Source of the DNA: Mytilus edulis
Taxonomy: Eukaryota
NCBI RefSeq assembly: GCF_963676685.1
Contig: NC_092347.1
Location: 17,174,001 to 17,238,000 of the forward strand
Direction of reading: 5' to 3'
DNA: 64,000 nucleotides
Part shown: piece after piece, positions 1 to 28,670 of the stretch
Position numbering within the stretch: position 1 is the first letter of the stretch
Layout: every line of letters begins with the position of its first letter
Translations under genes and position numbers: made by a program
The notes under the pieces: model-generated
What the model was told of the DNA's origin: nothing
Seen by the model: the letters and a program-made list of their open reading frames with translations, nothing else
Database searches by the model: none

Positions 1-251
1 CTTTAAGAATTTTTTGTTTCAATTTTCACTTCTTGTTTTCTAATTATTCTTCTTTGCGTAATATCATTTACAGGTTCACTTCGAACAAGAAATTAAAGTT
101 TAAATATGCTAAATGAATCGTTTTCTTGTAGTTTCGATCAATTGTAAACTTTCAATTCTAAAGTAAAACTTTGTCTTAAATATTCACGAAAATGTTTCAA
201 CTTTGTCAAAGCTATGAAAATACTACTACAGTAATATTTCTTCTTCAACAG

Positions 252-1243
252 TTGCCGATTTCTCCGTAGTAAAGACCGTCAACGAAATAGTTACCCTCTC
301 CTAACCTTTCCTGAAATGTACATTTTAGAGGGCGGCTACAAACAGTTTTACCAGAACCATAAGGTAATAATCAGATTTTATCTACGTGCAACATATGAAT
401 CGTATTTAAATAATTTTCATTATTATTAGGGGCGGATTCAGCCATTTTTAAAAGGGGGTTTCTAATCCAGGATAAAAAGGGGGTCCAACCATATGTCCTC
501 ATTCAAATTCATTGATCTCATTGGTCGTCATAAAGGGGAATTCCAACCTCCGGAACCCCTCCTCTCCTAATTATTGTCACACAATATGCTTTCGTTACTC
601 TTTGTTATTGTTTTTTTATAATCTCTTGCACGTTAAAGACACCCTTATAGATTTCGAAAAAGAGCAGGCTAATGCCGCTTCAAGGCAGCACTTGCACACA
701 AAGTGGAAAAGGATTAATATAAGTTGCAAAACTTGTTTCCCTATCCACTATAAATAAATAAGTTTGAATTAACTATTATATTTTAGTTCAATCTGTCATT
801 TTGTCTCAGTATATTGTATGATTAAACTGGGTTAAATTCAAGAACAGAACATGCAATATCAATATGTGTTTAAGACATTTTGTCAATTTATATACTAGTA
901 AACGTAAATATCGTTTTTTAAAGTGCTTTTCTAAGTCACTCATGCCACGGTTGTCCTACTAGTGCATTTTGCGAATGATAGTAAGCAGTCTAAAATACAC
1001 TCAGTTACTACTCAAGTTTAAACTGAGATTAAATACTTTGAAATGAGTACGATTGATGCCATGATGGCACTTCTGTTAGTATGAGCTACATTTTTTGGAA
1101 TGTTTCAGGAACTATGTGAACCAGTTGACTATGTTCCCATGCTACATAAAGACCATGTGGATGACATCAAACGATTTCGTTCTAAATCTAAATCTTGGAC
1201 TGCTGGAGAGAAAAAGAGAATACCTTTCTGTCTGTATTCCTGA
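252..1243 (+). CDS. cdc25: Cdc25 phosphatase, copy 1: last two coding exons (252-363, 1109-1243); upstream exons lie outside the window
   Basis: AG/GT-bounded exons translate to [37 protein letters not shown] and [44 protein letters not shown], the Cdc25 C-terminal catalytic region ([11 protein letters not shown], YxPM motifs). Same sequence as copy 2. Confidence 0.9.
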
Positions 1244-1268
1244 TGTCAGAACCTTACAACAAAGTAAT

Positions 1269-1430
1269 CCAAAAGTTCGCTCACCTGAACTTCAAACCAA
1301 ATGAAAGCATTGCCACTAAAGTTCGCTCAACTGAACCACAAACCGAATAAAGCATGCAGTGCGACAAACCAGTGATCCAAAAGTTCGTTCACCTGAACTT
1401 TTAACCAAATGATAGCAGTACTAGTGCCAC
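1269..1430 (+). repeat. Three imperfect ~36-bp direct repeats in the cdc25 3' UTR (also 12134-12295)
   Basis: aaagttcgctcacctgaacttcaaaccaaatga-like motif at ~1271, ~1318 and ~1380. Confidence 0.75.
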
Positions 1431-2272
1431 TAATTAGTGATTGGTCATTATCACCATATTCATCTGCTATCAAATATGATGGTGTATTCTTCAGTAAGCG
1501 TGTTATAAGAATGCAAAATTCAGCTTCTCAAGTTAAAGATATATCTAGGGAACAAGACATTTATGACACGAATCGCCAGTTCTGAGGTTGCTGAAAAAAC
1601 TGTCTATAAAAAAACCTTTTAAAGACAAAAAAACGAGCTCATTTAATAGAATGACAACACAGTTATGAAGCAAAAGTTATGACCTCGGACTTTTATATGA
1701 TAATTTCATACAGTTCTTCTATCATGAAATCAGATATGTTTCTTTTTTTCATTTTTCATGCTCAAGTAAACTTTATCATGTTTTATTATATAAATAACGA
1801 AATTTCGAGAAAAAATTGTTTTCAAATCTCTTTCACAGCCGTAAACTTTTCACAATACTAAATATTTCATTTATGCTAAAATTTACATTTAAAAAAAAAT
1901 AATGTATTAAAATATCCAATTCAACAAAGATCAATGTAATGCTGACAATTAACTGCAGAGGGGTTTCAAACGGAAGATCTGTATTGCAAATTTAAGAAAT
2001 GTACATACTATACAGCTTGCAGTGGACTAAACATACTCTTATTATGATAAGTTCCCTGGCCATCTTGATCATGAGTTGTGTGTTCCATATGCAATTGCCA
2101 GACACGTAAGATTAAAATAAAAGATCAATTTCGATATAAAACTTTTTAAAAAGAACTTTTTATGATCGTCAGTTTACAAGTATAGTCTTTTCAAAATAGT
2201 TTGTACAATTTTACCATTTGAATGCAATCATCAAAACGCACTTCAACCGGCATATAGAACAAACTCAGCTGA

Positions 2273-5200
2273 TTACAACTGAATGGGTTTCCTTAACTGT
2301 GATAGACAATCGTCAACTTGATGAGAAATATATTTCGCTGTATTGGAATGAGATTTCGATTGGTCTCGTGATATTTGCTGTTCACCTAATGTCCCATTGC
2401 TATCCGCCATGTTATGTATATATCGATTAGTACGCTTTTTAAGGGGTCGTGTATCCATTGGTGTTGTGACTTGTCTCCCAGGGATTGTATTATGGTTAAT
2501 ATAACTATCAGAATGATCATTACAATCTATCACCATATTTTTTGAACTGATGTCTGAGTCGGAGCTGCTATTTTCGGAATCTATTTCAATGGCAGAATTG
2601 CTTTCATAACGTTCCTCGTTTTCATGTCCTCCCAGAACGTTGATGGCATTTGTTATGCTGTTACCAAAACTGGTATCCATTTTATCATTTTGTCTGTTGT
2701 CGTCGTCCTGCCTTGTAAGAGTCAAAGCAACAGGTATTGGACATATATCAAAGTCACTGGGACAGTTAACAATCTCAGCTTTCTCTTCAACAAAAAACGT
2801 GTCCAGCTTCTCTGATTGTTCTGAAGGTTTTTGTTGCTGGTCATTTCTTAAGTATTGTTGCCAGCTGAAAAATAGAAGTGTAAAATCAAAAGTAGTCACT
2901 GTAGACACATTACCATTTGCATTTATTATTGGTTTCATTTCCAGAACTGGTAGATACATTTGTTTTTATTAAATTCTTACAAAATCATCCACATTTAGTT
3001 TATCGTCTTCTCCCTTTTCTTTTTCTCTACAGAAGTAGGTACAATGTATATGTTATTGAAGAGGTTCTTACCTTGAGACATCCACATTTAGTTTATCGTC
3101 TTCTCCCTTTTCCTTTTCTCTACAGAAGTAGGTACAATGTATATGTAATTGAAGAGGTTCTTACCTTGAGACATCCACATTTAGTTTATCGTCTTCACCC
3201 TTTTCCTTTTCTCTACAGAAGTAGGTACAATGTATATGTAATTGAAGAGGTTCTTACCTTGAGACATCCACATTTAGTTTATCGTCTTCACCCTTTTCCT
3301 TTTCTCTACAGAAGTAGGTACAATGTATATTTAATTGAAGAGGTTCTTACCTTGAGACATCCACATTTAGTTTATCGTCTTCTCCCTTTTCCTTTTCTCT
3401 ACAGAAGTAGGTACAATGTATATGTAATTGAAGAGGTTCTTACCTTGAGACATCCACATTTAGTTTATCGTTTTCACCCTTTTCCTTTTCTCTACAGAAG
3501 TAGGTACAATTATATGTAATTGAAGAGGTTCTTACCTTGAGACATCAACATTTAGTTTATCGTCTTCACCCTTTTCCTTTTCTCTACAGAAGTAGGTACA
3601 ATGTATATGTAATTGAAGAGGTTCTTACCTTGAGACATCCACATTTAGTTTATCGTCTTCTCCCTTTTCCTTTTCTCTACAGAAGTAGGTACAATGTATA
3701 TGTAATTGAAGAGGTTCTTACCTTGAGACATCCACATTTAGTTTATCGTCTTCTCCCTTTTCCTTTTCTCTAAAGAAGTAGGTAGAATGTATATGTAATT
3801 GAAGAGGTTCTTACCTTGAGACATCCACATTTAGTTTATCGTCTTCACCCTTTTCATTTTCTCTACAGAAGTAGGTACAATGTATATGTAATTGAAGAGG
3901 TTCTTACCTTGAGACATCCACATTTAGTTTATCGTCTTCTCCCTTTTCCTTTTCTCTAAAGAAGTAGGTAGAATGTATATGTAATTGAAGAGGTTCTTAC
4001 CTTGAGACATCTACATTTAGTTTATCGTCTTCTCCCTTTTCTTTTTCTCTACAGAAGTAGGTACAATGTATATGTAATTGAAGAGGTTCTTACCTTGAGA
4101 CATCCACATTTAGTTTATCGACTTCACCCTTTTCCTTTTCTCTACAGAAGTAGGTACAATGTATATGTTATTGAAGAGGTTCTTACCTTGAGACATCCAC
4201 ATTTAGTTTATCGTCTTCTCCCTTTTCCTTTTCTCTACAGAAGTAGGTACAATGTATATGTTATTGAAGAGGTTCTTACCTTGAGACATCCACATTTAGT
4301 TTATCGTCTTCACCCTTTTCCTTTTCTCTACAGAAGTAGGTACAATGTATATGTTATTGAAGAGGTTCTTACCTTGAGACATCCACATTTAGTTTATCGT
4401 CTTCTCCCTTTTCCTTTTCTCTACAGAAGTAGGTACAATGTATTTGTAATTGAAGAGGTTCTTACCTTGAGACATCCACATTTAGTTTATCGTCTTCTCC
4501 ATTTTCCTTTTCTCTACAGAAGTAGGTACAATGTATATGTAATTGAAGAGGTTCTTACCTTGAGACATCCACATTTAGTTTATCGTCTTCTCCCTTTTCT
4601 TTTTCTCTACAGAAGTAGGTACAATGTATATGTTATTGAAGAGGTTCTTACCTTGAGACATCCACATTTAGTTTATCGTCTTCACCCTTTTCCTTTTCTC
4701 TACAGAAGTAGGTACAATGTATATGTAATTGAAGAGGTTCTTACCTTGAGACATCCACATTTAGTGTATCGTCTTCTCCCTTTTCCTTTTCTCTACAGAA
4801 GTAGGTACAATGTATATGTAATTGAAGAGGTTCTTACCTTGAGACATCCACATTTAGTTTATCGTCTTCTCCCTTTTCCTTTTCTCTACAGAAGTAGGTA
4901 GAATGTATATGTTATTGAAGAGGTTCTTACCTTGAGACATCCACATTTAGTTTATCGTCTTCACCCTTTTCCTTTTCTCTACAGAAGTAGGTACAATGTA
5001 TATGTTATTGAAGAGGTTCTTACCTTGAGACATCCACATTTAGTTTATCGTCTTCTCCCTTTTCCTTTTCTCTACAGAAGTAGGTACAATGTATATGTAA
5101 TTGAAGAGGTTCTTACCTTGAGACATCCACATTTAGTTTATCGTCTTCACCCTTTTCCTTTTCTCTACAGAAGTAGGTACAATGTATATGTTATTGAAGA

Positions 5201-5756
5201 GGTTCTTACCTTGAGACATCCACATTTAGTTTATCGTCTTCACCCTTTTCCTTTTCTCTACAGAAGTAGGTACAATGTATATATTATTGAAGAGGTTCTT
5301 ACCTTGAGACATCCACATTTAGTTTATCGTACAATGTATATGTTATTAAAGAGGTTCTTACCTTGAGACATCCACATTTAGTTTATCGTCTTCTCCCTTT
5401 TCCTTTTCTCTACAGAAGTAGGTACAATGTATATGTTATTGAAGAGGTTCTTACCTTGAGACATCCACATTTAGTTTATCGTCTTCTCCCTTTTCCTTTT
5501 CTCTACAGAAGTAGGTACAATGTATATGTAGTTGAGGAGGTTCTTACCTTGAGACATCCACATTTAGTTTATCGTCTTCTCCCTTTTCCTTTTCTCTACA
5601 GAATTAGGTACAATGTATATGTTATTGAAGAGGTTCTTACCTTGAGACATCCACATTTAGTTTATCGTCTTCTCCCTTTTCCTTTTCTCTACAGAAGTAG
5701 GTACAATGTATATGTAATTGAAGAGGTTCTTACCTTGAGACATCCACATTTAGTTT
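2273..5756 (-). pseudogene. Orphan duplicate of the SoxH 3' end (terminal exon 2864-2273 plus ~30 array units), lacking HMG and 5' exons
   Basis: The 228-aa ORFs at 2273 and 13137 differ at only 2 residues. Homology stops abruptly mid-unit at 5756. Confidence 0.8.
2986..5756. repeat. 93-bp tandem array, ~30 units (copy 1)
   Basis: Unit gagacatccacatttagtttatcgtcttctcccttttccttttctctacagaagtaggtacaatgtatatgtaattgaagaggttcttacctt. One internally deleted unit near 5330. Confidence 0.97.
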
Positions 5757-6059
5757 CTATTCATGTGGGATATTTTTAAAGTATATTATATAACTATACA
5801 AATCCTTGTTATCTAATTGTAAACAAAAACTTAGTAAATTATGTGTTTTGGTTAAATATACATATTGGAATCACCTATTAAAAATTTCAAACAATGAACA
5901 CTGACAAAGGCAAACTTGACACTTATTTCATTTATTAAACTTTGTTTTCAAAAAGAAAAAATATTTAGATATCATTGATTTTAAAAAAGGCAGTTCATAT
6001 GTTAATTAAGAATCTGTGCTCACCCATTACATTAGGAATTAAAAATGCCAGATTCTCAA

Positions 6060-6290
6060 AAAATTGTATTGTACAGCTGATAAAGTTGAGGATGAGCGTC
6101 ATTTTCCAATCGCATGCCCACTTTATTATATTTGAGGAATGAACTCATTCAGCATATTTCTAGCACTTGTCAGAACTTTAAAAAGTTAAATAAACATGAT
6201 GAATCTTTTTTTTATTTGTTTTGATGTTAACACAAGAAAACTTTACTATTATGGGAAAAAATTCTTATTATATTGTTAGCTCTTTTGAAT
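6060..6290 (+). mobile_element. Degenerate 3' relic of a non-LTR retrotransposon (CR1/L2/Crack-like C-terminal Cys-His motif)
   Basis: Broken frame reads KVEDERHFPIACPLYY.LRNELIQHISSTCQNF, resembling the ED-E-HF-x2-C-x2-Y motif found downstream of the RT domain. Confidence 0.55.
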
Positions 6291-6639
6291 TTTGAAGCAC
6301 AAGTCTTGATACTGACTGTTATTTGGTTTCCGGGTTTATTGAAATCAGCTATATCGTGTGATGCTTTTTCAGATTAACAACTCAGCAACTTCATGTTTAC
6401 CGAAATATTTGGGCAGGGGTTTCATCAGTAGCTCGCACTGACTTTCACTTATTGTTCATTATATGCTCTTTATAGACCCTGCAATTTCGAAAATGAAATA
6501 TTCTTTTCTGTTCTATTCTATATGCAGATTTCGAATTGAGTATATACTTAGAAAGTATTCGAACTACCTTAGTCCTATGTTATATATACGGTGTTATTTC
6601 TTAAAATATGTTATAACATAGACGTACATGTAATAATAC

Positions 6640-7009
6640 CCCCGGGGCGGGGGGGGGGGGGCTGTTACTTGCTATATTTTTAGTGGTAAAGGTGTGCCGC
6701 AAAACAGGGTCACTTTTTCATGCCCTGCTTGTTAGAACAGGGTCTCTCTTTCATGTCCTGTTAGTTAGAACAGGGTCGCTTTTTATGCCTTGTTGACTAG
6801 AACAGGATCTCGTATTCAACTGTTGAAGATACAGTCTAGAACCCGGGTCTAGAACTGCATCTTATTTTATACGGTCTAGAACAGGTTATACATTTTCTGA
6901 GCATGTATAGAAGAGGGTGTGTTTTCAATGTTTTCTGGTTAGAACAGGGTATAATTTGGCAAGTGCTGTCGGCACAGTTATACTCGAAAGGATATCAGTA
7001 ACCCCCCGG
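6640..7009. mobile_element. MITE with CCCCGGGG...GTTACT / AGTAAC...CCGG termini, 8-bp TSD and internal ~30-bp repeats
   Basis: aataatac at 6632-6639 and 7010-7017; internal motif tagaacagggt repeated ~8 times. Confidence 0.7.
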
Positions 7010-7055
7010 AATAATACAGACATACACATTTTATTTTACCCTGATACCCTGATAA

Positions 7056-7135
7056 GTGTCGGACTTATGGGTTGTCGGATTATTGGGCTGTCGGAGCAAT
7101 GGGTTGTCGGACTATTGGGCTGTCGGAATAATGGC
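7056..7135. repeat. ~16-17-bp minisatellite (tgtcggactattgggc-like, ~5 copies)
   Basis: Direct inspection. Confidence 0.7.
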
Positions 7136-8349
7136 GTGTAACCGATCTTTGTGGTATGTCGGTATACCATCTTTTTTGCAAATTTATGGTTTTCAGTTGA
7201 AATTAAATTTATTAAGATCAATTTTGTTACATCTAATGATCTGTTTATTTGGCAAGGGCCATGGAAGTCAGCAGGGGTTAAGAATGTCTGTTGTTAGACC
7301 TGTAAATTCGTTAAAAATTAGAAAATATGGTGCGAAGTTAACGAGAAAGCTCTCAAAAGGGACCAAATGACGTATGATCTAGCAACTTTTGGTCATCTTT
7401 CGGCCTTCAACAATAGGAAAAAACAATACTAGCTTATATAGCGAGTTATAACAGTCCCGAATTAGCAAATGCAACACAATTTTAACGAGAAATCCTAATT
7501 TTCAAAACAATCAACGAAAAACAAGAGTGATATACAATAAAATCTTTAAAATGGTAAATTTAGTGATACTATTCCTATATTATATTACAGTCAGTGTTGA
7601 ATAACAACCTTTACTTTTATATCCACTATTAAAATAATTCCGAATTAACCGCTTCTTACCGTTCTTAACTAAAATGGAAAGAATGTTAACTCTTTGATTT
7701 GATTATTTCTGTAATATGCATTTTTATTTAAAGCCCTATAGACATATAAGACACGTTTATGATAATTGTAATTAATCTACATAATAACAATTTAAAAATG
7801 ATTTAAAACAATGAAAACGATTATGCTGATGTGTTGTTTGGTGTCAAATCTTACAAAATGGCTGTTGGCTGAATATAAGCAATGACGATCCGAGTGTGTC
7901 ACAGCTAAAAGCAGTTTACACGTCTGCTCACTCGGCTCGTGCACTCTCACGTTAAATTGTTTGTGGCTCAAGGTGTTATAATAAGGCAAAACTCTTGTTA
8001 AAAGGTGAGAAAAATTGTTCAAAGGTGAGAAATTGATAATTGGTCCGTTATTATTGGACATTTCTTTTAGAATGCTTATATATATAGATAAAAACTCAAA
8101 CTTCTTCAAATTTATTAAAACTTGATTTGCCAAATAGATGGTAAGGCATGTATAGTTTTCTATTTATGTTAACTTATTCTTATATTGATACACGTGTATT
8201 TTAACAAGTTTAGATATCACTGCAGTTATTTGTTTCCAGTGTTCTTCTGCATGTAAATTATCTACCACATGTTTTTTATTGGACCCTTTCAAAACCATTA
8301 TACCTGCTTTCTACTTTTCAGCATTCACGGTAATTCCTATGAAAGAAAT

Positions 8350-11300
8350 ATGTCTGTTTTATGTGAATTACCCAGTCGAGCAATGGATTATGAAGAAGAT
8401 GATATAACAGATTTAATCTCTCCACCTGACTTTCTTCAAAAGGTAAGCTGGCAAACTGGCGCATACTCAAACGAAACACAACTGTTAACAAAGACTTTCT
8501 CAGTTCCGTTTAGATTTTTTTTTTTTCGATTACAAAAATTGGAATAACTCCAAAATCTCCTTTCCTCGATAACTTTGCATACCTACCTGAAAAAGTTAAA
8601 TTTCGATGAAACCCAAGAATTTTGGCTTGTTAAGAAAATATTTATTTGCTTAACCATACATAAATTTATTTGTAGTTTCGATACATGTAAGATTATCGGT
8701 TATTTGAATTAACTTATTCTAAAAGGTTATCAATTTAAAATCTTTATACAATGTAAGAACATGTTTGTGAAGTTAGCGGCCAAGGATCTCTGCATATTGT
8801 TTTTATCGCTTCTAACATTGTTTTTGTTATCAAGTCATTAAAACATAAACTTATGGTTTTAACATCCTGCCAATAATTTATTTGGAATTGGGCAGTGACA
8901 TGCTTTCCTAGACGTCTCTATACAAAATCCATCGGATGTGTACAAATTGATATTTTGTCTTCGAAACATGATTTATTTCATTTGCTTTCAACTAGCTTTC
9001 AGTTTAACTGCGAGTACTCTCAGATCAGTACTTTGTATCATTAGTGTTTTGTTAGTTGTTATGGGCTTGGTATCGATCTGATGACTCAAACTCTTTTCGC
9101 CTGATTTTTTTGTAAGTGCTTATGTTGTGATGTTGCACTTCCGACCCAGCTTAGGTTGAGGGTCGCGCATCTTCAAACATGTCTAACCCAGTCATATTCT
9201 GTATGTGCATATCCCAAGGGATTCATTATGTGTCGAATAATATTTAAAAAAAATAGACGTCAACTCTGATGACTGACAAGGTTGAGAATCTAATTATTCT
9301 AGTTTCTATTTTATCATTATGTCCACTGACTGCTTCACTGCAAACCCATCATGTATATACATCATTTTTCAGGACAAGAATGTCAGTTATAACAGAAAAA
9401 CAAAACGAACGTCGTTAATGTCATTAGATCTGGGTAGTCCTTCACGACTTCATCCTGTCAAAAGATTTAAACAATCTTTGTCGTTCGGGGTATGTAAACA
9501 CCTTTTTAAGCTAGTGCTATTGCTCCCATTTGTCTCTATGTACAAAGTTGTATAGAAATTGCTAAGATATTTAAAAAAAAAAACTCCTTTTATCATCAAT
9601 ATTTACTCCTTTAATATTCGTGTTTGTCTATGATTATTATTTTCTTCTTCATATTCCTGCATTTTAATAAATTTTACTTATTACAGTGTTCAATTTTTTT
9701 CAGGATATGATTTGTGATCCGATTATTGAATCGAAGGTTGTTGTTAATGACATGTCAGGCGACAATTATATGATAGGAGACGGGAGTCGAAGGTATGCCC
9801 TTCCTACAATGACGGGGACAAACCCTGACCTAAAGACTATCTCACATGATACTGTAAGTTTGAGAAAATTCAACCCAGCTAAAACTTCCTATTGTGACAA
9901 AGAGTTTCAGTGATGTTCGTTACGAACTAGAATGAAATATTTGCCACTGTACGATGAGAAAACACAAATCAATCAATCAATCTCAGTGATATTTCTTTCA
10001 ACTATTCTATATTTATCAATCTTTCCAGGTTTGCTAGACAGGCCATTGCATTTTTAAAACTTGACATTGCAGACAATAAAAACGGCAGAGTTTTCTGTAT
10101 AGACATATCTATATTATACACACGTCAATTCTTTTGTAGAACGTGTTAAAGCCCTTATATCTCAATACTTTTTTTTCAGATGTCAAGCGTTATAAATGGT
10201 AGTTATGATGAAGTTTTATCCAGTTATCGTATCATTGACTGCAGATACCCCTATGAATATGAAGGTGGTCATATCAAGGTCAGTACAAGGATATCAATGT
10301 ATAGCATTCTCGGCCTCACTGTATCATAAAGCAGTGCGATTTAAATATAAAGGTTAATGGTACATCATATGTGGACAAGTTTTTTTTATTTTTATTTTAT
10401 GCAATTGGAAATATCCCTGCACCAAAATGTCGGTATATATGAACATTTTTTGCATGAGATAGAAAAAAAAGACAACGGTAATAGGATAGAAAAAAATAAT
10501 AATATTAAAATGAGGCATGAAGAACTACTACTTCCAATTGCAATGATTATTTCGGTTGTAACTATGTTTGTCTCAGTAAACAAATATCAGTAAAGAGTAT
10601 TCTATACAAAGGAAATATATAGTGAAGTACATTAGGAACTGAATTTGTTTCTTTTTTCTTTGTAGAATGCAGAAAACATTTATGCCAAAAATGGAATAAT
10701 AGAATTCCTTGAAGATAATTGTTGCGTTACGAAAAGGCAGGTGCTCATTTTTCATTGCGAATTTTCGTCCGAAAGAGGACCCAAGCTGTAAGTCAACACT
10801 GTATAATTATACCTTAAAATTGTCATACGTAACTGAAATCATGTACTAGTATACGTCGTGTAAATCTTTAAGAATTTTTTGTTTCAATTTTCACTTCTTG
10901 TTTTCTAATTATTCTTCTTTGCGTAATATCATTTACAGGTTCACTTCGAACAAGAAATTAAAGTTTAAATATGCTAAATGAATCGTTTTCTTGTAGTTTC
11001 GATCAATTGTAAACTTTCAATTCGAAAGTAAAACTTTGTCTTAAATATTCACGAAAATGTTTCAACTTTGTCAAAGCTATGAAAATACTACTACAGTAAT
11101 ATTTCTTCTTCAACAGTTGCCGATTTCTCCGTAGTAAAGACCGTCAACGAAATAGTTACCCTCTCCTAACCTTTCCTGAAATGTACATTTTAGAGGGCGG
11201 CTACAAACAGTTTTACCAGAACCATAAGGTAATAATCAGATTTTATCTACGTGCAACATATGAATCGTATTTAAATAATTTTCATTATTATTAGGGGCGG

Positions 11301-12108
11301 ATTCAGCCATTTTTAAAAGGGGTTTCTAATCCAGGATAAAAAGGGGTCCAACCATATGTCCTCATTCAAATTAATTGATCTCATTGGTCGTCATAAAGGG
11401 GAATTCCAACCTCCGGAACCCCTCCTCTCCTAATTATTGTCACACAATATGCTTTCGTTACTCTTTGTTATTGTTTTTTTTTATAATCTCTTGCACTTTA
11501 AAGACACCCTTATAGATTTCGAAAAAGAGCAGGCTAATGCCGCTTCAAGGCAGCACTTGCACACAAAGTGGAAAAGGATTAATATAAGTTGCAAAACTTG
11601 TTTCCCTATCCACTATAAATAAATAAGTTTGAATTAACTATTATATTTTAGTTCAATCTGTCATTTTGTCTCAGTATATTGTATGATTAAACTGGGTTAA
11701 ATTCAAGAACAGAACATGCAATATCAATATGTGTTTAAGACATTTTGTCAATTTATATACTAGTAAACGTAAATATCGTTTTTTAAAGTGCTTTTCTAAG
11801 TCACTCATGCCACGGTTGTCCTACTAGTGCATTTTGCGAATGATAGTAAGCAGTCTAAAATACACTCAGTTACTACTCAAGTTTAAACTGAGATTAAATA
11901 CTTTGAAATGAGTACGATTGATGCCATGATGGCACTTCTGTTAGTATGAGCTACATTTTTTGGAATGTTTCAGGAACTATGTGAACCAGTTGACTATGTT
12001 CCCATGCTACATAAAGACCATGTGGATGACATCAAACGATTTCGTTCTAAATCTAAATCTTGGACTGCTGGAGAGAAAAAGAGAATACCTTTCTGTCTGT
12101 ATTCCTGA
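8350..12108 (+). CDS. cdc25: Cdc25 (M-phase inducer) phosphatase, copy 2; exons 8350-8442, 9373-9489, 9704-9853, 10180-10278, 10666-10787, 11117-11228, 11974-12108; 275 aa if it starts at ATG 8350
   Basis: All junctions are GT-AG and phase-compatible. Contains [16 protein letters not shown] and the catalytic loop [13 protein letters not shown] (HCX5R). The start codon is uncertain. Confidence 0.92.
8990..9240 (+). repeat. Dispersed repeat fragment in a cdc25 intron; related fragment at ~22530-22580
   Basis: Shared actgcga(g/a)tactctcagatcagtactttgt core. Confidence 0.55.
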
Positions 12109-13136
12109 TGTCAGAACCTTACAACAAAGTAATCCAAAAGTTCGCTCACCTGAACTTCAAACCAAATGAAAGCATTGCCACTAAAGTTCGCTCAACTGAA
12201 CCACAAACCGAATAAAGCATGCAGTGCGACAAACCAGTGATCCAAAAGTTCGTTCACCTGAACTTTTAACCAAATGATAGCAGTACTAGTGCCACTAATT
12301 AGTGATTGGTCATTATCACCATATTCATCTGCTATCAAATATGATGGTGTATTCTTCAGTAAGCGTGTTATAAGAATGCAAAATTCAGCTTCTCAAGTTA
12401 AAGATATATCTAGGGAACAAGAAATTTATGACACGAATCGCCAGTTCTGAGGTTGCTGAAAAAACTGTCTATAAAAAAACCTTTTAAAGACAAAAAAACG
12501 AGCTCATTTAATAGAATGACAACACAGTTATGAAGCAAAAGTTATGACCTCGGACTTTTATATGATAATTTCATACAGTTCTTCTATCATGAAATCAGAT
12601 ATGTTTCTTTTTTTCATTTTTCATGCTCAAGTAAACTTTATCATGTTTTATTATATAAATAACGAAATTTCGAGAAAAAATTGTTTTCAAATCTCTTTCA
12701 CAGCCGTAAACTTTTCACAATACTAGTATTTCATTTATGCTAAAAATTACATTTAAAAAAAAATAATGTATTAAAATATCCAATTCAACAAAGATCAATG
12801 TAATGCTGACAATTAACTGCAGAGGGGTTTCAAACGGAAGATCTGTATTGCAAATTTAAGAAATGTACATACTATACAGCTTGCAGTGGACTAAACATAC
12901 TCTTATTATGATAAGTTCCCTGGCCATCTTGATCATGAGTTGTGTGTTCCATATGCAATTGCCAGACACGTAAGATTAAAATAAAAGATCAATTTCGATA
13001 TAAAACTTTATAAAAAGAACTTTTTATGATCGTCAGTTTACAAGTATAGTCTTTTCAAAATAGTTTGTACAATTTTACCATTTGAATGCAATCATCAAAA
13101 CGCACTTCAACCGGCATATAGAACAAACTCAGCTGA

Positions 13137-16100
13137 TTACAACTGAATGGGTTTCCTTAACTGTGATAGACAATCGTCAACTTGATGAGAAATATATTTC
13201 GCTGTATTGGAATGAGATTTCGATTGGTCTCGTGATATTTGCTGTTCACCTAATGTCCCATTGCTATCCTCCATGTTATGTATATATCGATTAGTACGCT
13301 TTTTAAGGGGTCGTGTATCCATTGGTGTTGTGACTTGTCTCCCAGGGATTGTATTATGGTTAATATAACTATCAGAATGATCATTACAATCTATCACCAT
13401 ATTTTTTGAACTGATGTCTGAGTCGGAGCTGCTATTTTCGGAATCTATTTCAATGGCAGAATTGCTTTCATAACGTTCCTCGTTTTCATGTCCTCCCAGA
13501 ACGTTGATGGCATTTGTTATGCTGTTACCAAAACTGGTATCCATTTTATCATTTTGTCTGTTGTCGTCGTCCTGCCTTGTAAGAGTCAAAGCAACAGGTA
13601 TTGGACATATATCAAAGTCACTGGGACAGTTAACAATCTCAGCTTTCTCTTCAACAAAAAACGTGTCCAGCTTCTCTGATTGTTCTGAAGGTTTTTGTTG
13701 CTGGTCATTTCTTAAGTATTGTTGCCAGCTGAAAAATAGAAGTGTAAAATCAAAAGTAGTCACTGTATACACATTACCATTTGCATTTATTATTGGTTTC
13801 ATTTCCAGAACTGGTAGATACATTTGTTTTTATTAAATTCTTACAAAATCATCCACATTTAGTTTATCGTCTTCACCCTTTTCTTTTTCTCTACAGAAGT
13901 AGGTACAATGTATATTTTATTGAAGAGGTTCTTACCTTGAGACATCCACATTTAGTTTATCGTCTTCTCCCTTTTCCTTTTCTCTACAGAAGTAAGTACA
14001 ATGTATATGTAATTGAAGAGGTTCTTACCTTGAGACATCCACATTTAGTTTATCGTCTTCTCCCTTTTCCTTTTCTCTACAGAAGTAGGTACAATGTATA
14101 TGTAATTACAGAGGTTCTTACCTTGAGACATCCACATTTAGTTTATCGTCTTCTCCCTTTTCCTTTTCTTTACAGAAGTAGGTATAATGTATATGTTATT
14201 GAAGAGGTTCTTACCTTGAGACATCCACATTTAGTTTATCGTCTTCTCCCTTTCCTTTTCTCTACAGAAGTAGGTACAATGTATATGTAATTGAAGAGGT
14301 TCTTACCTTGAGACATCCACATTTAGTTTATCGTCTTCTCCCTTTTCCTTTTCTCTACAGAAGTAAGTACAATGTATATGTAATTGAAGAGGTTCTTACC
14401 TTGAGACATCCACATTTAGTTTATCGTCTTCTCCCTTTTCCTTTTCTCTACAGAAGTAAGTACAATGTATATGTAATTACAGAGGTTCTTACCTTGAGAC
14501 ATCCACATTTAGTTTATCGTCTTCTCCCTTTTCCTTTTCTCTACAGAAGTAAGTACAATGTATATGTAATTGAAGAGGTTCTTACCTTGAGACATCCACA
14601 TTTAGTTTATCGTCTTCTCCCTTTTCCTTTTCTCTACAGAAGTAGGTACAATGTATATGTAATTGAAGAGGTTCTTACCTTGAGACATCCACATTTAGTT
14701 TATCGTCTTCTCCCTTTTCCTTTTGTCTACAGAAGTAGGTACAATGTATATGTTATTGAAGAGGTTCTTACCTTGAGACATCCACATTTAGTTTATCGTC
14801 TTCTCCCTTTTCCTTTTGTCTACAGAAGTAGGTACAATGTATATGTTATTGAAGAGGTTCTTACCTTGAGACATCAACATTTAGTTTATCGTCTTCTCCC
14901 TTTTCCTTTTCTTTACAGAAGTAGGTACAATGTATATGTAATTGAAGAGGTTCTTACCTTGAGACATCCACATTTAGTTTATCGTCTTCTCCCTTTTCCT
15001 TTTCTTTACAGAAGTAGGTACAATGAATATGTAATTGAAGAGGTTCTTACCTTGAGACATCCACATTTAGTTTATCGTCTTCTCCCTTTTCCTTTTCTTT
15101 ACAGAAGTAGGTACAATGTATATGTAATTGAAGAGGTTCTTACCTTGAGACATCCACATTTAGTTTATCGTCTTCTCCCTTTTCCTTTTCTTTACAGAAG
15201 TAGGTACAATGTATATGTAATTGAAGAGGTTCTTACCTTGAGACATCCACATTTAGTTTATCGTCTTCTCCCTTTTCCTTTTCTCTACAGAAGTAGGTAC
15301 AATGTATATGTTATTGAAGAGGTTCTTACCTTGAGACATCCACATTTAGTTTATCGTCTTCTCCCTTTTCCTTTTCTTTACAGAAGTAGGTACAATGTAT
15401 ATGTAATTGAAGAGGTTCTTACCTAGAGACATCCACATTTAGTTTATCGTCTTCTCCCTTTTCCTTTTCTTTACAGAAGTAGGTACAATGTTTATTTTAT
15501 TGAAGAGGTTCTTACCTTGAGACATCCACATTTAGTTTATCGTCTTCTCCCTTTTCCTTTTCTCTACAGAAGTAGGTACAATGTATATGTAATTGAAGAG
15601 GTTCTTACCTAGAGACATCCACATTTAGTTTATCGTCTTCTCCCTTTTCCTTTTCTTTACAGAAGTAGGTACAATGTATATGTTATTGAAGAGGTTCTTA
15701 CCTAGAGACATCCACATTTAGTTTATCGTCTTCTCCCTTTTCCTTTTCTCTACAGAAGTAGGTACAATGTATATGTAATTGAAGAGGTTCTTACCTTGAG
15801 ACATCCACATTTAGTTTATCGTCTTCTCCCTTTTCTTTTTCTCTACAGAAGTAGGTACAATGTATATGTAATTGAAGAGGTTCTTACCTTGAGACATCCA
15901 CATTTAGTTTATCGTCTTCTCCATTTTCTTTTTCTCTACAGAAGTAGGTACAATGTATATGTAATTGAAGAGGTTCTTACCTTGAGACATCCACATTTAG
16001 TTTATCGTCTTCTCCCTTTTCTTTTTCCTACAGAAGTAGGTACAATGTATATGTTATTGAAGAGGTTCTTACCTAGAGACATCCACATTTAGTTTATCGT

Positions 16101-19100
16101 CTTCACCTTTTTCCTTTTCTCTACAGAAGTAGGTACAATGTATATGTTATTGAAGAGGTTCTTACCTTGAGACATCCACATTTAGTTTATCGTCTTCTCC
16201 TTTCTCCTTTTCTCTACAGAAGTAGGTACAATGTATATGTAATTGAAGAGGTTCTTACCTAGAGACATCCACATTTAGTTTATCGTCTTCTCCCTTCTCC
16301 TTTTCTCTACAGAAGTAGGTACAATGTATATTTTATTGAAGAGGTTCTTACCTTGAGACATCCACATTTAGTTTATCGTCTTCTCCCTTCTCCTTTTCTC
16401 TACAGAAGTAGGTACAATGTATATGTTATTGAAGAGGTTCTTACCTAGAGACATCCACATTTAGTTTATCGTCTTCTCCCTTTTCCTTTTCTCTACAGAA
16501 GTAGGTACAATGTATATGTTATTGAAGAGGTTCTTACCTTGAGACATCCACATTTAGTTTATCGTCTTCTCCCTTTTCCTTTTCTCTACAGAAGTAGGTA
16601 CAATGTATATGTTATTGAAGAGGTTCTTACCTTGAGACATCCACATTTAGTTTATCGTCTTCTCCCTTTTCCTTTTCTTTACAGAAGTAGGTACAATGTA
16701 TATGTAATTGAAGAGGTTCTTACCTAGAGACATCCACATTTAGTTTATCGTCTTCTCCCTTTTCCTTTTCTTTACAGAAGTAGGTACAATGTTTATTTTA
16801 TTGAAGAGGTTCTTACCTTGAGACATCCACATTTAGTTTATCGTCTTCTCCCTTTTCCTTTTGTCTACAGAAGTAGGTACAATGTATATGTTATTGAAGA
16901 GGTTCTTACCTTGAGACATCCACATTTAGTTTATCGTCTTCACCCTTTTCCTTTTCTCTACAGAAGTAGGTAGAATGTATATGTAATTGAAGAGGTTCTT
17001 ACCTAGAGACATCCACATTAAGTTTATCGTCTTCTCCCTTTTCTTTTTCTCTACAGAAGTAGGTACAATGTATATTTTATTGAAGATGTTCTTACCTTGA
17101 GACATCAACATTTAGTTTATCGTCTTCTCCCTTTTCCTTTTCTCTACAGAAGTAGGTACAATGTATATGTAATTGAAGAGGTTCTTACCTAGAGACATCC
17201 ACATTTAGTTTATCGTCTTCTCCCTTTTCCTTTTCTCTACAGAAGTAGGTACAATGTATATGTAATTGAAGAGGTTCTTACCTTGAGACATCCACATTTA
17301 GTTTATCGTCTTCTCCCTTTTCCTTTTCTCTACAGAAGTAGGTACAATGTATATGTAATTGAAGAGGTTCTTACCTTGAGACATCCACATTTAGTTTATC
17401 GTCTTCTCCCTTTTCCTTTTCTCTACAGAAGTAGGTAGAATGTATATGTAATTGAAGAGGTTCTTACCTTGAGACATCCACATTTAGTTTATCGTCTTCT
17501 CCCTTTTCTTTTTCTCTACAGAAGTAGGTACAATGTAAATGTTATTGAAGAGGTTCTTACCTTGAGACATCCACATTTAGTTTATCGTCTTCACCTTTTT
17601 CCTTTTCTCTACAGAAGTAGGTATTATATGGATCTCTTTCTACAATGGTATCATCTATTGGACCTGAAAGGTAAAGTAAAGTACTGTTTCAAATAAAAAC
17701 AAAACAGAGACAACATTACAACAACTCTTCAATTAAATTACAGTATTGCTATTCTGTAATACATGTACATCACAAAAAAGAGTAAAACAGATCCACAACC
17801 CTAAATTGAAAACTCCTCGAGTCGAATTCTTCTGAAACCGGTTTTATGACAATGGAATGTATCTAGTACTAGTATTAGCTGTTTGGAATGATTTGATTGC
17901 ATCTTTTTTCATGTTGCAGTATCTTGTTGGTTTTATAACAAGTTCGTTTCTCAACATCAAAAGTAGTGATTTGTCGCAAAATAAAGCAAATTCAAAGACA
18001 GTCAGAAAAAGAACATTCATTTGGAAAATATGTTAGAAATATAAAAATCATGAGAAGTTATTACCCTCAAACATGTCGTCCACGTGAGATTCCTGCTCTG
18101 CTGGTGGGAACGGGAACGGCCAAAAGTCTTCTGGATGTTCCTCTCTCAGCTGTGTCGTACTTCCGGGAAGAGTGGTAGAGGCAAGCTCTGAATCATCATC
18201 GGTAGTCTTGTCTGTGTCTAAAGTGTTGCTATGGTCTGCTTTCTTTGATTTCTTTGAAGACCTAGAACCATATTTGATTAAAAACAAAATGCAATGTTGT
18301 TTGGTGCAATCACGCGTATTCTTTAACTAACATTTCAATTACCTCATATACATATTGTGTAAGAGAATGATATAAACACACTGCAAGCTCTTCTGATTAC
18401 TTAAAAAAATCTGAATCCACTTCTTCTTATGATACTCTGCTACAGCAATCACAGGTTGAAGATTGAAGACCATCATTCTGATCCAATTATTTAAAGAAAA
18501 ATCTAGTTCAGTAAAATAGGCCGAACGAATAGTATATAAAAAAGGGTAGAAATGTTAACATGCAAAATGCCTTACGATTTTTTATTATCACTGTCCTTTT
18601 TTCTTGTCCTCTGTGCTTTCTTTGTCTTTAGCTCTTTATCCTCTACTGGCTTGTCAGTATTGTCCTTAGCAGACGTCTCGGGTGCTTGATCTTTCTTACA
18701 TACTTCATTTGTCTTTTCATTCTTTTCTGTTGCATTACAGGCTTTGCTTTCCAATGTGATAGGATGATGAACTGTTTTCCCAACTGCTTCAGCTTGAATC
18801 TTTGCCTGTAAGTCTGCTGGAACAGCTGAATTCATAAAAAGTTATATCTGTGTTCATTGGATAGAAAAAAAATGAATTATTTATATAATGCAGAAATAAA
18901 TGATAGACGATAGCTCACTAAAATAAAATTCAGCTCACTGTCACAGGGCATGAACACAAGTATTCGTCGCATATATAAGTTTTTGCTACATTGTCTCGTC
19001 TAGGAAGAATATCGCAGAGCACGGAACAGAAGGTAGACAAACTGGATATACAAATGACGCATGCCATGGTCTGAAGTTTCCGACTTGCATTATATGTCTA

Positions 19101-22100
19101 TCGTCCTTGAACTCAATTTCATAGTCCAGTTCATTTTCACTGAAAATGAATGTATGGTGCATATATATCTGTCAACATTTTATAGCGATATACAAAATAA
19201 TTTATTGTTATGCATAAATCAGCCCATTGTATTTTTTTCTTTCATATTCTTTAATATGTTAACATATCCGACCCGTTTTTCGATGAATATACGGTATATT
19301 CTCATTGTTGGGGGTCGTACGGTTACCTATACATGCTTGGATCCGCTCCATTTGGTCTCTGGTAGCTAGTTGTCTCATTCATTGTCAATGACATTACATG
19401 TACTTATTCTAAAAAAAAAATAGGTATTGGCCATGTCCATCCGAAAGTGTGCAACTGAATTTGTTTATGGTTTATTGATCAATGTTGACTTCTCGTTATT
19501 TTGGTCCAGACCTTACTTTCCCGAGACATCATTAAAAGTATAATACACGTTAAATGGACATCATCTATAATCATTCTAACTAATCATACCTTTAAGTCTC
19601 TCAGTGACCACAGGCGGTCTACCCCTCGGAGCTGGTATTTGAACAGGAACTGGTTTGGGGTGTATTATTGTGACATTTTGTACGGCATTGTAGTCAGGTA
19701 TTCCTGCTGTTTGTAATCTTGGAACGTCTTGAAAAGGAAGCTGATTTCCTGAGCATGAATATAAACATATGATATATAATCATCCCAAGTCTTATATGGA
19801 TGTATATGTTACAAAATGCCTAAATCTATAAAATGCCTGTAACATATATATATTGATTAGACCAAAATATTTTAGTAACTGATTTTTATGTATGATTACT
19901 AGTATAAAGAGCCCTAAATGATAAAGACAGTTGAATAAAAATGTGATATGATATTCAGTGTTGCGGTATATAAAGATGGATGTTTATTGCTGCGTACATT
20001 CAGTGATCATAGTAATAAGTGGTGCTGTATAGAGGTAAATATAAATAACATACCATTCAAGAAATTCCTTGGCTGGAATGGCTGTCCGTACATGGGATAT
20101 TGCATTGGTTGAACGATTCGTAGTCCTGGCGGACAGACAAATTGGTTACCTTGAGGTAGCATCGTTACAGGTTGAATAGGCATTACATTACGGGGTAATA
20201 TTGGTCTGTTTTGTTGTCCAATAAAATTAACAAAAGGTCCTTGAGGTGTCGGTGCAATTTGACTTGCAGCCATTTTTGGCCGACTTTCGTTGTATTTACT
20301 CCATAGCTGTCTGTGATTTAGAGTGGTTCCACATTCCTCGACGCCTTTCTTTGTCGATGGCTCTGGTTGATAAATCCAATCTAAAATTATTGAATTCTGA
20401 TGATTTAAAGAACAAAATAAATCAATTTAAGGTCCAAATTTTAAACAAATCATTAATTTCAATTGTTCTTTTTTTTTCTGTTGGGTATCGTCGTATTTTG
20501 TTAACTCTTTGTATGGTCCTCTTGAAGTCAACCATCCGTCAGTTTTAAATGGTTTAGATTTTTAGGGGAAAGCATTAGGCCATAGTATAAACTCTGAACT
20601 ATTTAACTTGAGGAGCCAACAATTCTTCATAGATTATAAGAATGATAATTTTGAGTTAAACCTAAAAGAATCGATTTAAGAATTGATTTGATCATAACGA
20701 AATAAAGAGGTATGCATGATTATTCACTTAAAACTTATAGAAAATTTAATGAAGTTATTTTATATTAAGGGGCCTCGTGCGTATAAACCATTTTTTTTTC
20801 AAATATAGGATTTCCCTTTATTTTTCTACAAATGAACTTTATCTCGTACTTTTAAAATTGAAAGATGAAATAAAAAATGTAGTCACCGATCATTTAAGCT
20901 CACAATCTGCCTTCGAAAGAAGCAGACGTTTTTTGTAAAATTACTTTTTTTCTGTTGAACTAATAGGAGAAATAAAGGTAATATCGAACTTGAAAAAAGA
21001 AAAACTAAACTACAGATATTACCCAAATTTTACAATAGTTTAGTTTAAGTACAGCTTATTTGAAAATAATAATAAAAAATATAGGTCATCGATGAGTTAA
21101 AAAAGATATTTCAATTTTAATGCCAAAAAAATGGCATTTTTGCACTAAAGGGAGATAATTTGGAGCTTTTTCAATGATATATACATTTTGAAAGTCATCT
21201 GGGGCCAAAACGAATTGATTTTTTTGAATGAGTTTTGTTCCATATGATAAAGTAACAACTAATAAAGTAATAAATCAAATGTGTAATGAAAACAAAAACG
21301 TTTATTTTTTTTCTGAAATTTTGATACCCGCAAGCCTCCTTAAATGGTTTGATAAATTCTCACTTGAAATCTATTTTAGATACAATTTCTTCTGTTAAAT
21401 CTTATCCTCGGGGTTGTTTTCACAATATCTTTATAGAGATCCTTTTTTAAATCCGTTTTTTTAAATTATAAACCATGATAGCAGAGTTCGCGAAATCTTT
21501 TTTTCCCTAGTGGTCCTTCAAAAAAATCTACTGGACCTCACTACTAATTCTATTGAAAAATACTAAAATTGTGTCAGTCCTATGCAAAATTTTGGTGGTA
21601 AAATCCTGAGGACTGACACTTTTCGTGAACTCTGTGATAGCAGCAAGAAAATATTTACCCCCCCCCCCCCCCCCTTTTTCAAAAAAAGTAAAACCTACTG
21701 CATGGAAAAATATATTTAAATTCGATATAACGGATTTCTATGAACTATTGCAATAGTCTAGAATTGTTTTAACTGAATCCGAGCATCTTCGTCTTAATTT
21801 TAATTGCTTTTCACATTATTTGAAGCACTTATACGTTAAAGAATCAGCTAATTGGGGGAAAAGTAAAGAGACAGTCCATACAATCTCTACAGTCACATGA
21901 AAATCCCAGAACCATAGGAGCATCGCTTTTATTGTTTTTCTTCCTCTCACAGTCAATATATGAAATGTAAAGCTGACAGAAATAGATTAGTGAATCCGTG
22001 ATTTTATGGAAAATGATGTAGAAATTGTTATTTCATGAACAGTTTTCATCATTTGATGCAGGGTTTACAATTCTACAGTAAAAGAGAGTTCCATTAGTAA

Positions 22101-23919
22101 TTTTGTGAGTGAATTGTAATACTGCGAACCTGGGAAGTCTTGTCTGTGTCTTGCTTTAACCCTTTCTGCTTCCATGTAGTACTTCTGCTTCTCATCCTTT
22201 GCCAAATGACTCCACAACTCTCCCAATTTGACACTTATCTCAGCATTTGATGCATTTGGGGTTTCCTCAGCCAGCTTTCCTCTTGCTGTTCTTGCCCAGA
22301 TCATAAAGGCATTCATTGGACGTTTTATCTTACCATTCTTATTCCGAGAACTTTGACCAGGTGTTCTATACGGTATCCCAGTACCTAATAAACGTGAACA
22401 TGTATATGATATACATTTTAGTTACAAGTTTGTATTTATATGCAGGAATACAACTTTGAATTATATTTCAGACTTTAGTATAATGTCTAAACATTACTTA
22501 TTAGTTGTTATAGTAATATTGTCTTTGAATTAGCTTTTAATGACTGCGAATACTCTCAGATCAGTACTTTGTGTGTCTAGTCTTAATGTTAGTTTTTTTG
22601 TTTTTGTGTTATTGAATTCATATCTATAAAAACATAAGAGGAATCTTTAAATAGCAATGTTGCATAAACAAGTCACTCATCGTGTTTCTTGTGTAATTAC
22701 TAATCCGATGACAAGTCTCATTCGATAGTTCACATCCGAGGAAAAGAGGACGGGCTTGAGGTTACGACAATTGGAACATATCTGTCGTCATCTATATGAG
22801 ACAGATACTCAATTACGGTCATCTAACTCGTGATGACGACAGTAATCATGAAAGCAATGCATAGATTGAAGCCCTGAAATATCGTATCAACAAGGAGATT
22901 TTTAGACTCTTTAGGACGGCACTGCCGCAATGTTGCTGCATAGAAATAGAAAGTTCACAGTGGAGAAGATGAGATAAGTCATTAAAATTTTGTTCTCAAT
23001 CGACCCTTGGTGTAAATTTCTAGATGTACAAGTCAAAATTGGCGCAAATGAATTCAATATTCAGTCGCGGAACATCGGTGGCCAAGTGGGTAATTAGTTC
23101 ATCTATACAGTAACTACTATTTGTAACCTGTAAATATTGAGATTGTAAGTTCGAGTCCCAACCGTTGCAGGTAGCATGCCTATCTTAATTGCAGGGGATT
23201 GACATCTTTCCTCTTGAAGTTTTCGACAAAAAAAATTGTTGAGCAAAGAGTGTCGAATGTGGCGTATATATATAGCAATCTCAACAACCCTCTATCAATC
23301 AAACATTTTCTTGCACATTTTTTTGGAAGATAACTTTGAGCGCAAATTGTAATCTTACTGTCATATCAGTGCAATTGCCGCAAAACGAATGCTGCCATTT
23401 TATTTTATATGATGTTTAAACTTAAATTATAGATTTTTTTGTTCTAGGCAAATGTATAATCATGTATTGGAGTTTTTTGCCTAATTCTTATAAAAAATAT
23501 TATTTGTTTAAACTCAATAAAAATATACCTGGCATGAGAGTAGGTGCAGGATGCTTTCTTTTTGCTGGTAAATCTTCTGGTAGAAATCTTCTTTTTATAG
23601 ATCCATCTGCTGACATAAAGAAAATCTCTGTTTTCTGACATTCCTGAGGGTTTATGGCTTGAAATGGTGTTGCAACATTCAGCGCATTTGCAAGTATCGG
23701 CATTTTGTCTACAGGTTCGGGTGAATGACATACAACTGTCTTAACTGTTTCAATACCCCGTCCACCTTTCTGTGTTAAATTAGCCGAATTTGTTTTATTT
23801 ATGCAAAGTCCATTTTCATTTCCCGGCGATAAAGTTTTGCTGATTTCATTATCAGATGAAACATGTTCTGAAAGAATTTTGAGAACTTGAGAACAAGTGC
23901 CTAAAATGTCTTTTGACAT
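13137..23919 (-). CDS. SoxH: SoxH/Sox30-like HMG-box transcription factor; exons 23919-23529, 22384-22130, 20380-20054, 19748-19590, 18825-18576, 18261-18065, 17663-17561, [micro-exon array 17560-13850], 13728-13137; 757 aa without array exons
   Basis: The spliced HMG box KIKRPMNAFMIWARTARGKLAEETPNASNAEISVKLGELWSHLAKDEKQKYYMEAERVKARHRQDFPDWIYQP has the Sox RPMNAFM signature and the group-H-like NAEISV and FPxWxYQP motifs. All 8 exons join in phase with GT-AG sites. A P/Q-rich region follows the HMG box. Confidence 0.88.
13850..17623 (-). repeat. 93-bp tandem array, ~40 units, inside the SoxH gene; each unit is a 45-nt gtaaga...ctgtag intron plus a 48-nt candidate micro-exon
   Basis: Reverse complement reads AAG|gtaagaacctcttcaattacatatacattgtacctacttctgtag|AGAAAAGGAAAAGGGAGAAGACGATAAACTAAATGTGGATGTCTCAAG. 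The array is certain; exon use is inferred. Confidence 0.95.
20769..21339. mobile_element. Non-autonomous TTAA-specific DNA element (Kolobok/piggyBac-like) in a SoxH intron
   Basis: TTAA flanks both ends (20765-20768, 21340-21343); imperfect TIRs ggggcctcgtgcgtat / atacccgcaagcctcc. Confidence 0.65.
21482..21634. mobile_element. 153-bp MITE
   Basis: TIR cagagttcgcgaaa / tttcgtgaactctg (1 mismatch); tgatag directly repeated on both flanks. Confidence 0.75.
23064..23270 (+). mobile_element. tRNA-derived SINE-like element
   Basis: A-box-like GGTGGCCAAGTGG (~23077) and B-box GTTCGAGTCCC (~23149) with an over-long spacer; no complete cloverleaf. Confidence 0.55.
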
Positions 23920-28246: not shown

Positions 28247-28484
28247 TTACATTTTTAGTTATAATCATGAAAACACAATTTTATATATTTTATTATTTAA
28301 TTCACCTGTGCACTTTATTGTTGGAGCACGTGTTATCATGAGTGAAAAGTTGTATTGAGCAATGCAACTGCTTACGGAATAACACGTGATGTGCAGTTAG
28401 CCAATCAGAATAAAATATTATTATGAAACATACATCTAATGTAATTATATGTAATTAAATCATACTATTGGTAGAGAAATTCAC

Positions 28485-28670
28485 AATTTGTTATATCAAA
28501 TTGACAATTTGTTATTTCTAATTGATAATTTGTTATATCAAATTGATAATCTGTTATATCAAATTGATAATTTGTTATATTAAATTCATATTTTGTTATA
28601 CCAAATTCATAATTTGTTATATCAAATTCATAATCTGTTATATCAAATTCATAATTCGTCATATTAAATT
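28485..28670. repeat. 21-bp minisatellite (ttgttatatcaaattgataat, ~8-9 copies)
   Basis: Direct inspection; it explains the spurious ITNYEFD-repeat ORF at 28465-28689. Confidence 0.9.

Follow-up and report, generated by a model that had tools for sequence, protein, structure and literature searches.

Among the described tandem repeats, the closest to the one treated here are minisatellites in which the first monomer spans an exon-intron boundary, so that copies of the authentic donor recur along the intron (PMC1557585). They include human F7 IVS7 (37 base pairs, bp), LMNB2 (100 bp in 10-15 copies) and PDGF intron 4 (81 bp in 16-18 copies), as well as CBS IVS13 and IFI6 (6-16), and in F7, LMNB2 and PDGF the authentic, most upstream donor alone is used, for which the authors proposed 5'-to-3' scanning (PMC1557585). 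Our subject is a 93-nucleotide (nt) tandem repeat in a Sox-type gene of Mytilus edulis, within a window of 64,000 nt (assembly GCF_963676685.1, contig NC_092347.1, positions 17,174,001 to 17,238,000 of the forward strand); all positions below are those of the window. Iterated, near-identical units of exon and intron are also found in the flagelliform silk genes of spiders, where the units are homogenised together and the exons are spliced together and translated. The original prediction, made from the letters of the DNA, read the Sox repeat in a similar way, as 48-nt micro-exons and 45-nt introns that are or recently were translated under purifying selection. We find it likely that the array is instead a lineage-specific minisatellite in the last intron of the Sox gene, of which the first copy is translated and the copies B1-B40 are intronic, and that the excess of silent changes among the units does not come from their translation.

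The gene lies on the minus strand and begins, in the part that we studied, with a Sox-type HMG box (Pfam PF00505 HMG_box, E=1.3e-21, on 22134-22421 of the minus strand). Its parts are the following, where exons 2 to 5 rest on RNA joints, splice contexts and frame:

22130 to 22421, minus strand: HMG-box exon, upper boundary not fixed; a loose end at 20382 matches 22132 onward
20054 to 20380, minus strand: exon 2 of the gene part studied
19590 to 19748, minus strand: exon 3
18576 to 18825, minus strand: exon 4
18065 to 18261, minus strand: exon 5
17561 to 17663, minus strand: exon 6 of 103 nt, made of 55 nt and then the 48-nt part of unit B0; encodes ..PIDDTIVERDPYNTYFCREKEKGEDDKLNVDVS
13729 to 17560, minus strand: intron 6 of 3832 nt, holding B1-B40 with the terminal partial unit and closing with 122 nt that end in TTTTTCAG
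13850 to 17623, minus strand: array B, 40.6 copies of 93 nt by Tandem Repeats Finder (TRF) and the unit table, with its first unit common to exon 6
13137 to 13728, minus strand: coding part of the terminal exon (S-WQQYLRND...KPIQL), joined in frame as AG|C = Ser and ending at the stop 13137-13139

When the exons are followed one by one with a script, the frame is stop-free from the HMG-box exon through exon 6 and across the split serine codon to this stop, and exon 6 is translated in the Sox frame as ..PYNTYFCREKEKGEDDKLNVDVS (..NTYFCREKEKGEDDKLNVDVS). On the minus strand the 48-nt part of each unit reads AGAAAAGG...GTCTCAAG and the 45-nt part reads GTAAGAAC...CTTCTGTAG. TRF calls two arrays of this unit, at 2986-5756 (array A) and 13850-17623 (array B), and in register array A has 30 units and array B 40, each with a terminal partial unit. 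A genome search found no copies of the unit elsewhere in the 1.37-Gb genome, and a dispersed satellite family is therefore ruled out.

The evidence that decides between an intronic and a translated array is the RNA. A search of sequencing runs gave runs in which about 27% of the 31-letter words sampled across 13100-22450 occur, together with raw RNA sequencing under the same species label. Two contig runs (X1 and X2, which stand under two organism labels) and two raw RNA runs (X21 and X24) were aligned to 17330-22000, from the 5' edge of array B through the exons upstream of it, and joints were listed at a threshold of 3 reads. The gene is silent in X21, and X1, X2 and X24 carry a minus-strand transcript with GT..AG joints. 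Exon 6 is entered in these three runs by the joint 18063|17661 (cut +2), also GT..AG. From 17561, the base before the GT of the first unit, all continuations are the start of the terminal exon, from 13728 downward, as seen in an X1 contig, in a 2650-nt X2 contig and in 88 of the 88 continuing X24 reads (agreement 1.0). The consensus of the loose ends at 17561 matches 13699-13728, and the letters at the junction of exon 6 with the terminal exon are ..GTCTCAAG|CTGGCAAC... No joint that skips the 45-nt part (from ..GTCTCAAG to AGAAAAGG..) was listed in the four runs at 3 reads over 17330-22000.

X1 and X2 do not cover units B1-B3, and their depth at 17330-17485 is 0. Zero depth is also seen in the other introns, and we are therefore looking at RNA without a background of pre-mRNA. 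X24 has a modest depth on B1-B3, which fits a second allele of exon 6 that is closer to unit B2 than to B0. The donors were inspected directly up to B2. Donor choice by the spliceosome thus falls on the first unit, the most upstream of the series, whose donor is joined to the terminal exon, and the remaining units are removed as intron.

This second form of exon 6 in X24 lacks 9 codons (27 nt, in frame, at 17625-17651) that stand between direct repeats of ATACC. It is carried by 47 reads and the full form by 64. This shorter form is probably an indel allele.

The structure of the unit shows how an intronic array can look like a row of small exons. The 15 nt before every 48-nt part (TACCTACTTCTGTAG) are exactly the coding sequence of exon 6 at that place, the codons T-Y-F-C-R, and the unit therefore combines the final 63 nt of exon 6 with roughly 30 nt from the start of the intron. 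The apparent 45-nt intron is a chimera of these 30 nt of intron start and 15 nt of exon 6 coding sequence, and its "acceptor" TGTAG is the exon 6 codon pair TGT-AGA (Cys-Arg). The array arose when a segment straddling the boundary of exon 6 and intron 6 was duplicated in tandem.

A related species carries the gene with no such array. A word search with the terminal exon, from which full-length-protein sizes were excluded, gave only a genomic-ORF (open reading frame) fragment of the same species (P0001) and a homolog with 48% identity (P0002), and this homolog of the terminal exon led to L013, a contig from a related species. Exon 6 is present there once, likewise with 103 nt, and reads GPIEDTLEDTDSGNTYLCEQKEKPGGEKFNVNVS (..NTYLCEQKEKPGGEKFNVNVS) with TGT GAA instead of TGT AGA, and intron 6 of about 1070 nt is without a tandem array. 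The exon 6 peptide is 53% identical to that of this ortholog. With this identity and the 27-nt indel allele, exon 6 is weakly constrained, which argues against strong selection on 40 extra copies of its end.

Two further observations concern repeats in this part of the gene. In the exon 5 ortholog of the related species (L013:265-518) there is an 84-nt (28-codon) tandem repeat in 3.1 copies inside the coding sequence, and tandem duplications seem to arise readily in the C-terminal half of the Sox gene. Between the last unit of array B and the acceptor of the terminal exon, a stretch of 122 nt (13729-13850) aligns weakly with the unit (GTAAGAA..TTTAAT..AAATGTATCTACC..TTCTG) and may be an older, decayed unit at the array edge.

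The variation among the units is the observation on which the original prediction was built, and what it had described is borne out in part. Every variant that it named for its roughly 70 units is found in the 70 full units and the partials. The donor AAG|GTAAGAAC is unchanged in 70 of 70 full units, in line with its remark that no mutated GT donor is seen. Its stop-creating variant of the 45-nt part (aattac/aataac) is real but trivial, as every unit already stops the read-through frame at its donor, where AGG TAA is read. The unit spacing is 93 nt except for three 1-nt deletions and one 34-nt deletion, the latter joining A4 and A5 into one. Two of the units, B17 and B36, have a 1-nt deletion in the 48-nt part, each of which leads to a stop. 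The last G of the 45-nt part (column 93) is changed in 10 of the 40 B units, turning the "acceptor" AG into AA, and in these units use of the next AG, which is 2 nt further down, would put the reading out of frame and onto a stop. Array A has a G>T at -4 in two units and a C>A in the pyrimidine tract of one. The changes at the supposed acceptor, the two deletions in the 48-nt part and the 34-nt deletion had been overlooked in the original prediction.

For the statistics we collapsed the variants of the 48-nt part to distinct changes of site and base, which is the most conservative count of independent mutations, and scored them in the frame A|GAA AAG ... TCA AG. Counted by units, terminal partials included, the synonymous variants are GGA/GGT in 15, AAG/AAA at two sites in 9 and 3, GAA/GAG in 3, GTG/GTT/GTA in 3 and 1, TCA/TCT in 9 and CTA/CTT in 1, and the replacement variants are E>Q in 3, K>N in 2 and 1, and D>N, D>V and K>T in 1 each. 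The distinct variants are a lower bound on the number of mutation events and the unit counts (44 synonymous against 9 replacement) an upper bound. We bracketed the number in this way in place of using a tree because recombination among units makes a tree unreliable.

There are 14 distinct substitutions in the true Sox frame, 8 of them synonymous and 6 replacement, where 19-20% synonymous would be expected, and the variants are thus mostly synonymous as had been claimed (binomial P=0.002; P=0.0015 in a Monte Carlo test weighted for transitions and transversions). A Fisher test over the possible changes, with 8 of 28 synonymous and 6 of 116 replacement changes seen, gives P=0.001. Third codon positions hold 10 of the 14 (P=0.004), an enrichment that is kept after the collapse to independent mutations and whose loss would, by its own account, have refuted the original prediction. 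The ratio of replacement to silent rates (dN/dS) is about 0.18 in the exon frame (P=0.001-0.002, from a small sample of 14 changes). A ratio below 1 had been proposed as a mark of the exon frame only; the low value is found there, but the antisense frame with the same third positions scores alike (9 of 14, P=0.003), and the other frames are neutral. Replacement changes are also sparser than the changes in columns 49-78 (6 of 116 possible against 14 of 90, P=0.017).

The silent excess is unevenly spread. Variants found in at least 2 units are 6 synonymous to 2 replacement (P=0.001), while the singletons look neutral, with 2 synonymous to 4 replacement and both frameshift deletions. Variants private to array A are 1 synonymous to 4 replacement and those private to array B 4 to 1. 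Within array B the 48-nt part has 25 differences in the half on the exon 6 side and 9 in the other, against 20 and 28 in the 45-nt part (P=0.007, from counts that are not independent). The expressed exon 6 is itself polymorphic for two of the common silent variants of the array, at column 13 (AAA/AAG; 17596 T>C in X1, X2 and X24) and at column 16 (GGA/GGT; 17407 T>A in X24). The most likely account of this pattern is that the common variants passed a selective filter while in the coding first unit and later entered the array, either by copying of allelic exon 6 polymorphisms or by unequal exchange of exon 6 with units next to it. Such a filter would constrain columns 1-56, the coding tail and the donor, and leave the mock acceptor free, which is what is seen.

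If the interior units were instead 48-nt micro-exons separated by 45-nt introns, translated now or recently as a (EKEKGEDDKLNVDVSR)n tract, the silent excess, the sparse replacement changes and the 70 intact donors would follow directly, and the 48-nt part is indeed frame-symmetric and lies in the true Sox frame. We nevertheless consider this very unlikely. The first donor always goes to the terminal exon in three runs, with no 45-nt joint and with B1-B3 uncovered in X1 and X2, the supposed acceptor is a pair of exon 6 codons, and the ortholog does without the array. A change that destroys the acceptor has been amplified to 10 units, which is hard to reconcile with functional micro-exons, and to this the two frameshift deletions are added. 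Array A has the same commonest synonymous variant, yet no promoter or upstream exons, and the weak constraint on exon 6 also speaks against it. A last point is weak evidence: the 33-residue exon 6 peptide, repeated or not, has no match at E<=0.001 among 1.84 billion cluster representatives, where the species' own protein is also unfound. What remains of the claim is a real frame, a translated first unit and a nominally significant synonymous excess, while its extension to the interior units fails on the RNA; the weaker claim that these units were translated recently may still hold. Even less can be said for the plus strand, where the consensus unit has one open frame and ORFs of up to 407 amino acids (HPHLVYRLLPFPFLYRSRYNVYVIEEVLTLR repeats) might encode a repetitive protein. 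As predicted, most of the variants (12 of 14) are non-synonymous in that frame, but with 2 of 14 synonymous, and 7 of 32 against 7.2 expected, they are neutral there. The ORF is split many times over, by stops and by the three 1-nt deletions, the RNA of the locus is spliced with minus-strand GT..AG joints, and X1 and X2 have no depth over B1-B3. We rejected plus-strand coding for its neutral variants and broken ORFs, and give it next to no chance.

Chance or site-specific mutability, in a purine-rich sequence with a hexamer periodicity in step with the codons, is a serious alternative to the filter in the first unit, and we hold it possible although we do not favor it as the source of the silent excess. 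There are only 14 distinct changes, and columns 7, 13 and 37 are each changed twice, which implies hot spots. Judged by eye, 4 of the 5 C[C]T sites, which read AGG on the minus strand, vary, and of their six distinct variants two fall in the 45-nt part (columns 57 and 82). Nine of the 14 substitutions are in the purine tract (columns 1-21), together with the two 1-nt deletions of the 48-nt part, and the antisense frame does as well as the coding one. Against this, 6 of 10 changes are still synonymous (P about 0.005) when columns 7 and 13 with their AGG context are left out, and the bias is limited to multi-copy variants and to array B near the coding exon, neither of which a pure mutation bias predicts. 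Rather doubtful in our view is that the interior units are kept exon-competent by proxy, with a fast polar turnover at the end of exon 6 moving units or chimeras into the coding first position. In a very large population such indirect exposure could purge replacement and donor changes and leave columns 57-93 free to vary, and if this were true the array would be a reservoir of pre-filtered exon 6 alleles.

The reading of the array as an intronic minisatellite has its own weak points. It rests on three expressing runs of unknown tissue that were aligned to the 5' edge of the array, and a rare or stage-specific inclusion of interior units below about 3% would escape. Isoforms that use a downstream donor carry a stop, so nonsense-mediated decay could remove them. 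The silent excess, the depletion of replacement changes and the invariant donors would be expected from a direct coding constraint as well. We infer that the old, amplified variants which carry the silent excess were most likely filtered in the coding first unit, a step that adds to this side of the balance. The 1-nt deletions, one of which lies in an A run, could be assembly errors, and an assembly that placed two haplotypes in tandem by mistake could account for arrays A and B.

The second array belongs to a duplicate of the end of the gene, with these parts:

2273 to 2864, minus strand: coding part of the duplicate terminal exon, with flanks 99.5% identical to the B copy
2986 to 5781, minus strand: array A, about 30 units, its 5' end cut inside a unit, part of the young segmental duplicate
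5790 to 7150, no strand given: filler between the duplicate copies, a dispersed transposon-like repeat with >1000 candidate genome copies

The window stretches 1-5781 and 7157-17623 are duplicates with 93-99.5% identity, of which 1-3029 against 10866-13893 has 99.5%, and the homology extends beyond the window start, with -3663 to 0 matching 7157-10865. The 5' end of the duplicate is cut inside a unit at about 5781, where it adjoins the dispersed repeat. Array A, the terminal exon copy and about 7 kb of 3' flank are thus a young, 5'-truncated tandem segmental duplicate of about 10 kb. The upstream Sox exons are absent from array A, and its units are therefore outside the Sox coding sequence. 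In this one assembly the copy number differs between the two paralogous or haplotypic arrays, with 41 against about 31 units.

The identity of the host gene within the Sox family is less firmly placed. A protein atlas search with the HMG exon returned generic HMG-box clusters only and no Sox subgroup, and a Pfam search of exons 2, 4 and 7 gave no family. We presume that the gene belongs to group H (SoxH/Sox30), a putative label that rests on the earlier reading of this DNA and on the NAEISV motif. In exon 4, at 18686-18688, GG+T or TGT is inserted behind 18686/18688 in about 40% of the X24 reads and in the X2 contig, making the coding sequence polymorphic for a 3-nt indel that keeps the frame. 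In the intron between the HMG exon and exon 2, RNA depth at 20762-21697 is very high, reaching thousands in X2, and variants, 1-nt indels and loose ends are numerous there, some of the latter poly-C. The stretch looks like a highly expressed dispersed repeat outside the Sox mRNA.

The rest of the window holds repeats of other kinds. A direct duplication of 2.7 kb joins 33873-36529 and 43745-46388 at 92% identity, followed by 37728-38082 against 47774-48124 at 85%. A 35-nt tandem array in 42 copies (76% match) with a strong negative GC skew lies at 49993-51463, and further arrays are found at 40566-41354 (35 nt and 135/261 nt) and 28477-28670 (21 nt).

These results carry a caution for genome scans, in that the look of dozens of in-frame micro-exons, GT..AG "introns" and even a synonymous bias are possible in a purely intronic satellite. 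One look at the RNA and one ortholog were enough to overturn the coding reading. If the silent excess holds in more data, it would show how sequence exchange between the coding first unit and the units in the intron affects the variation of a minisatellite. With 41 identical 5' splice sites one after another, the locus is an extreme invertebrate case and could be used to test the choice of the upstream donor first outside mammals. The array also sits in a gene that, subject to the group H label, is tied to male gonad development in bivalves.

SoxH is male-biased in bivalves (PMC11470919, PMC13219418). Like this male-gonad factor, SoxH/Sox30, the gene described here has an HMG box, and its silence in X21 and good expression in another run fit a tissue-restricted expression. 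The array resembles the flagelliform silk genes of spiders in its tandem exon-plus-intron look, but its interior units are not spliced together in the RNA. The likeness to the F7 and LMNB2 type goes further. There is a head-to-tail array within an intron, with 13729-17560 placed inside one intron by the RNA joints, the first monomer holds the exon end and the authentic 5' splice site, and the donor is repeated identically. As in F7, LMNB2 and PDGF, the most upstream donor is the one used in the three RNA runs. The Sox array differs from the cases in PMC1557585 in having more copies (41), and its monomer includes 63 nt of coding sequence where that of F7 includes 4 bp. Unlike the F7 and LMNB2 type, the monomer by accident carries a pyrimidine stretch ending in AG, and mimics a frame-preserving micro-exon; the host is an invertebrate Sox gene, and the unit variants show a silent excess. 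The Sox array is thus an unusually large addition to the known class of boundary minisatellites, in an invertebrate Sox gene.

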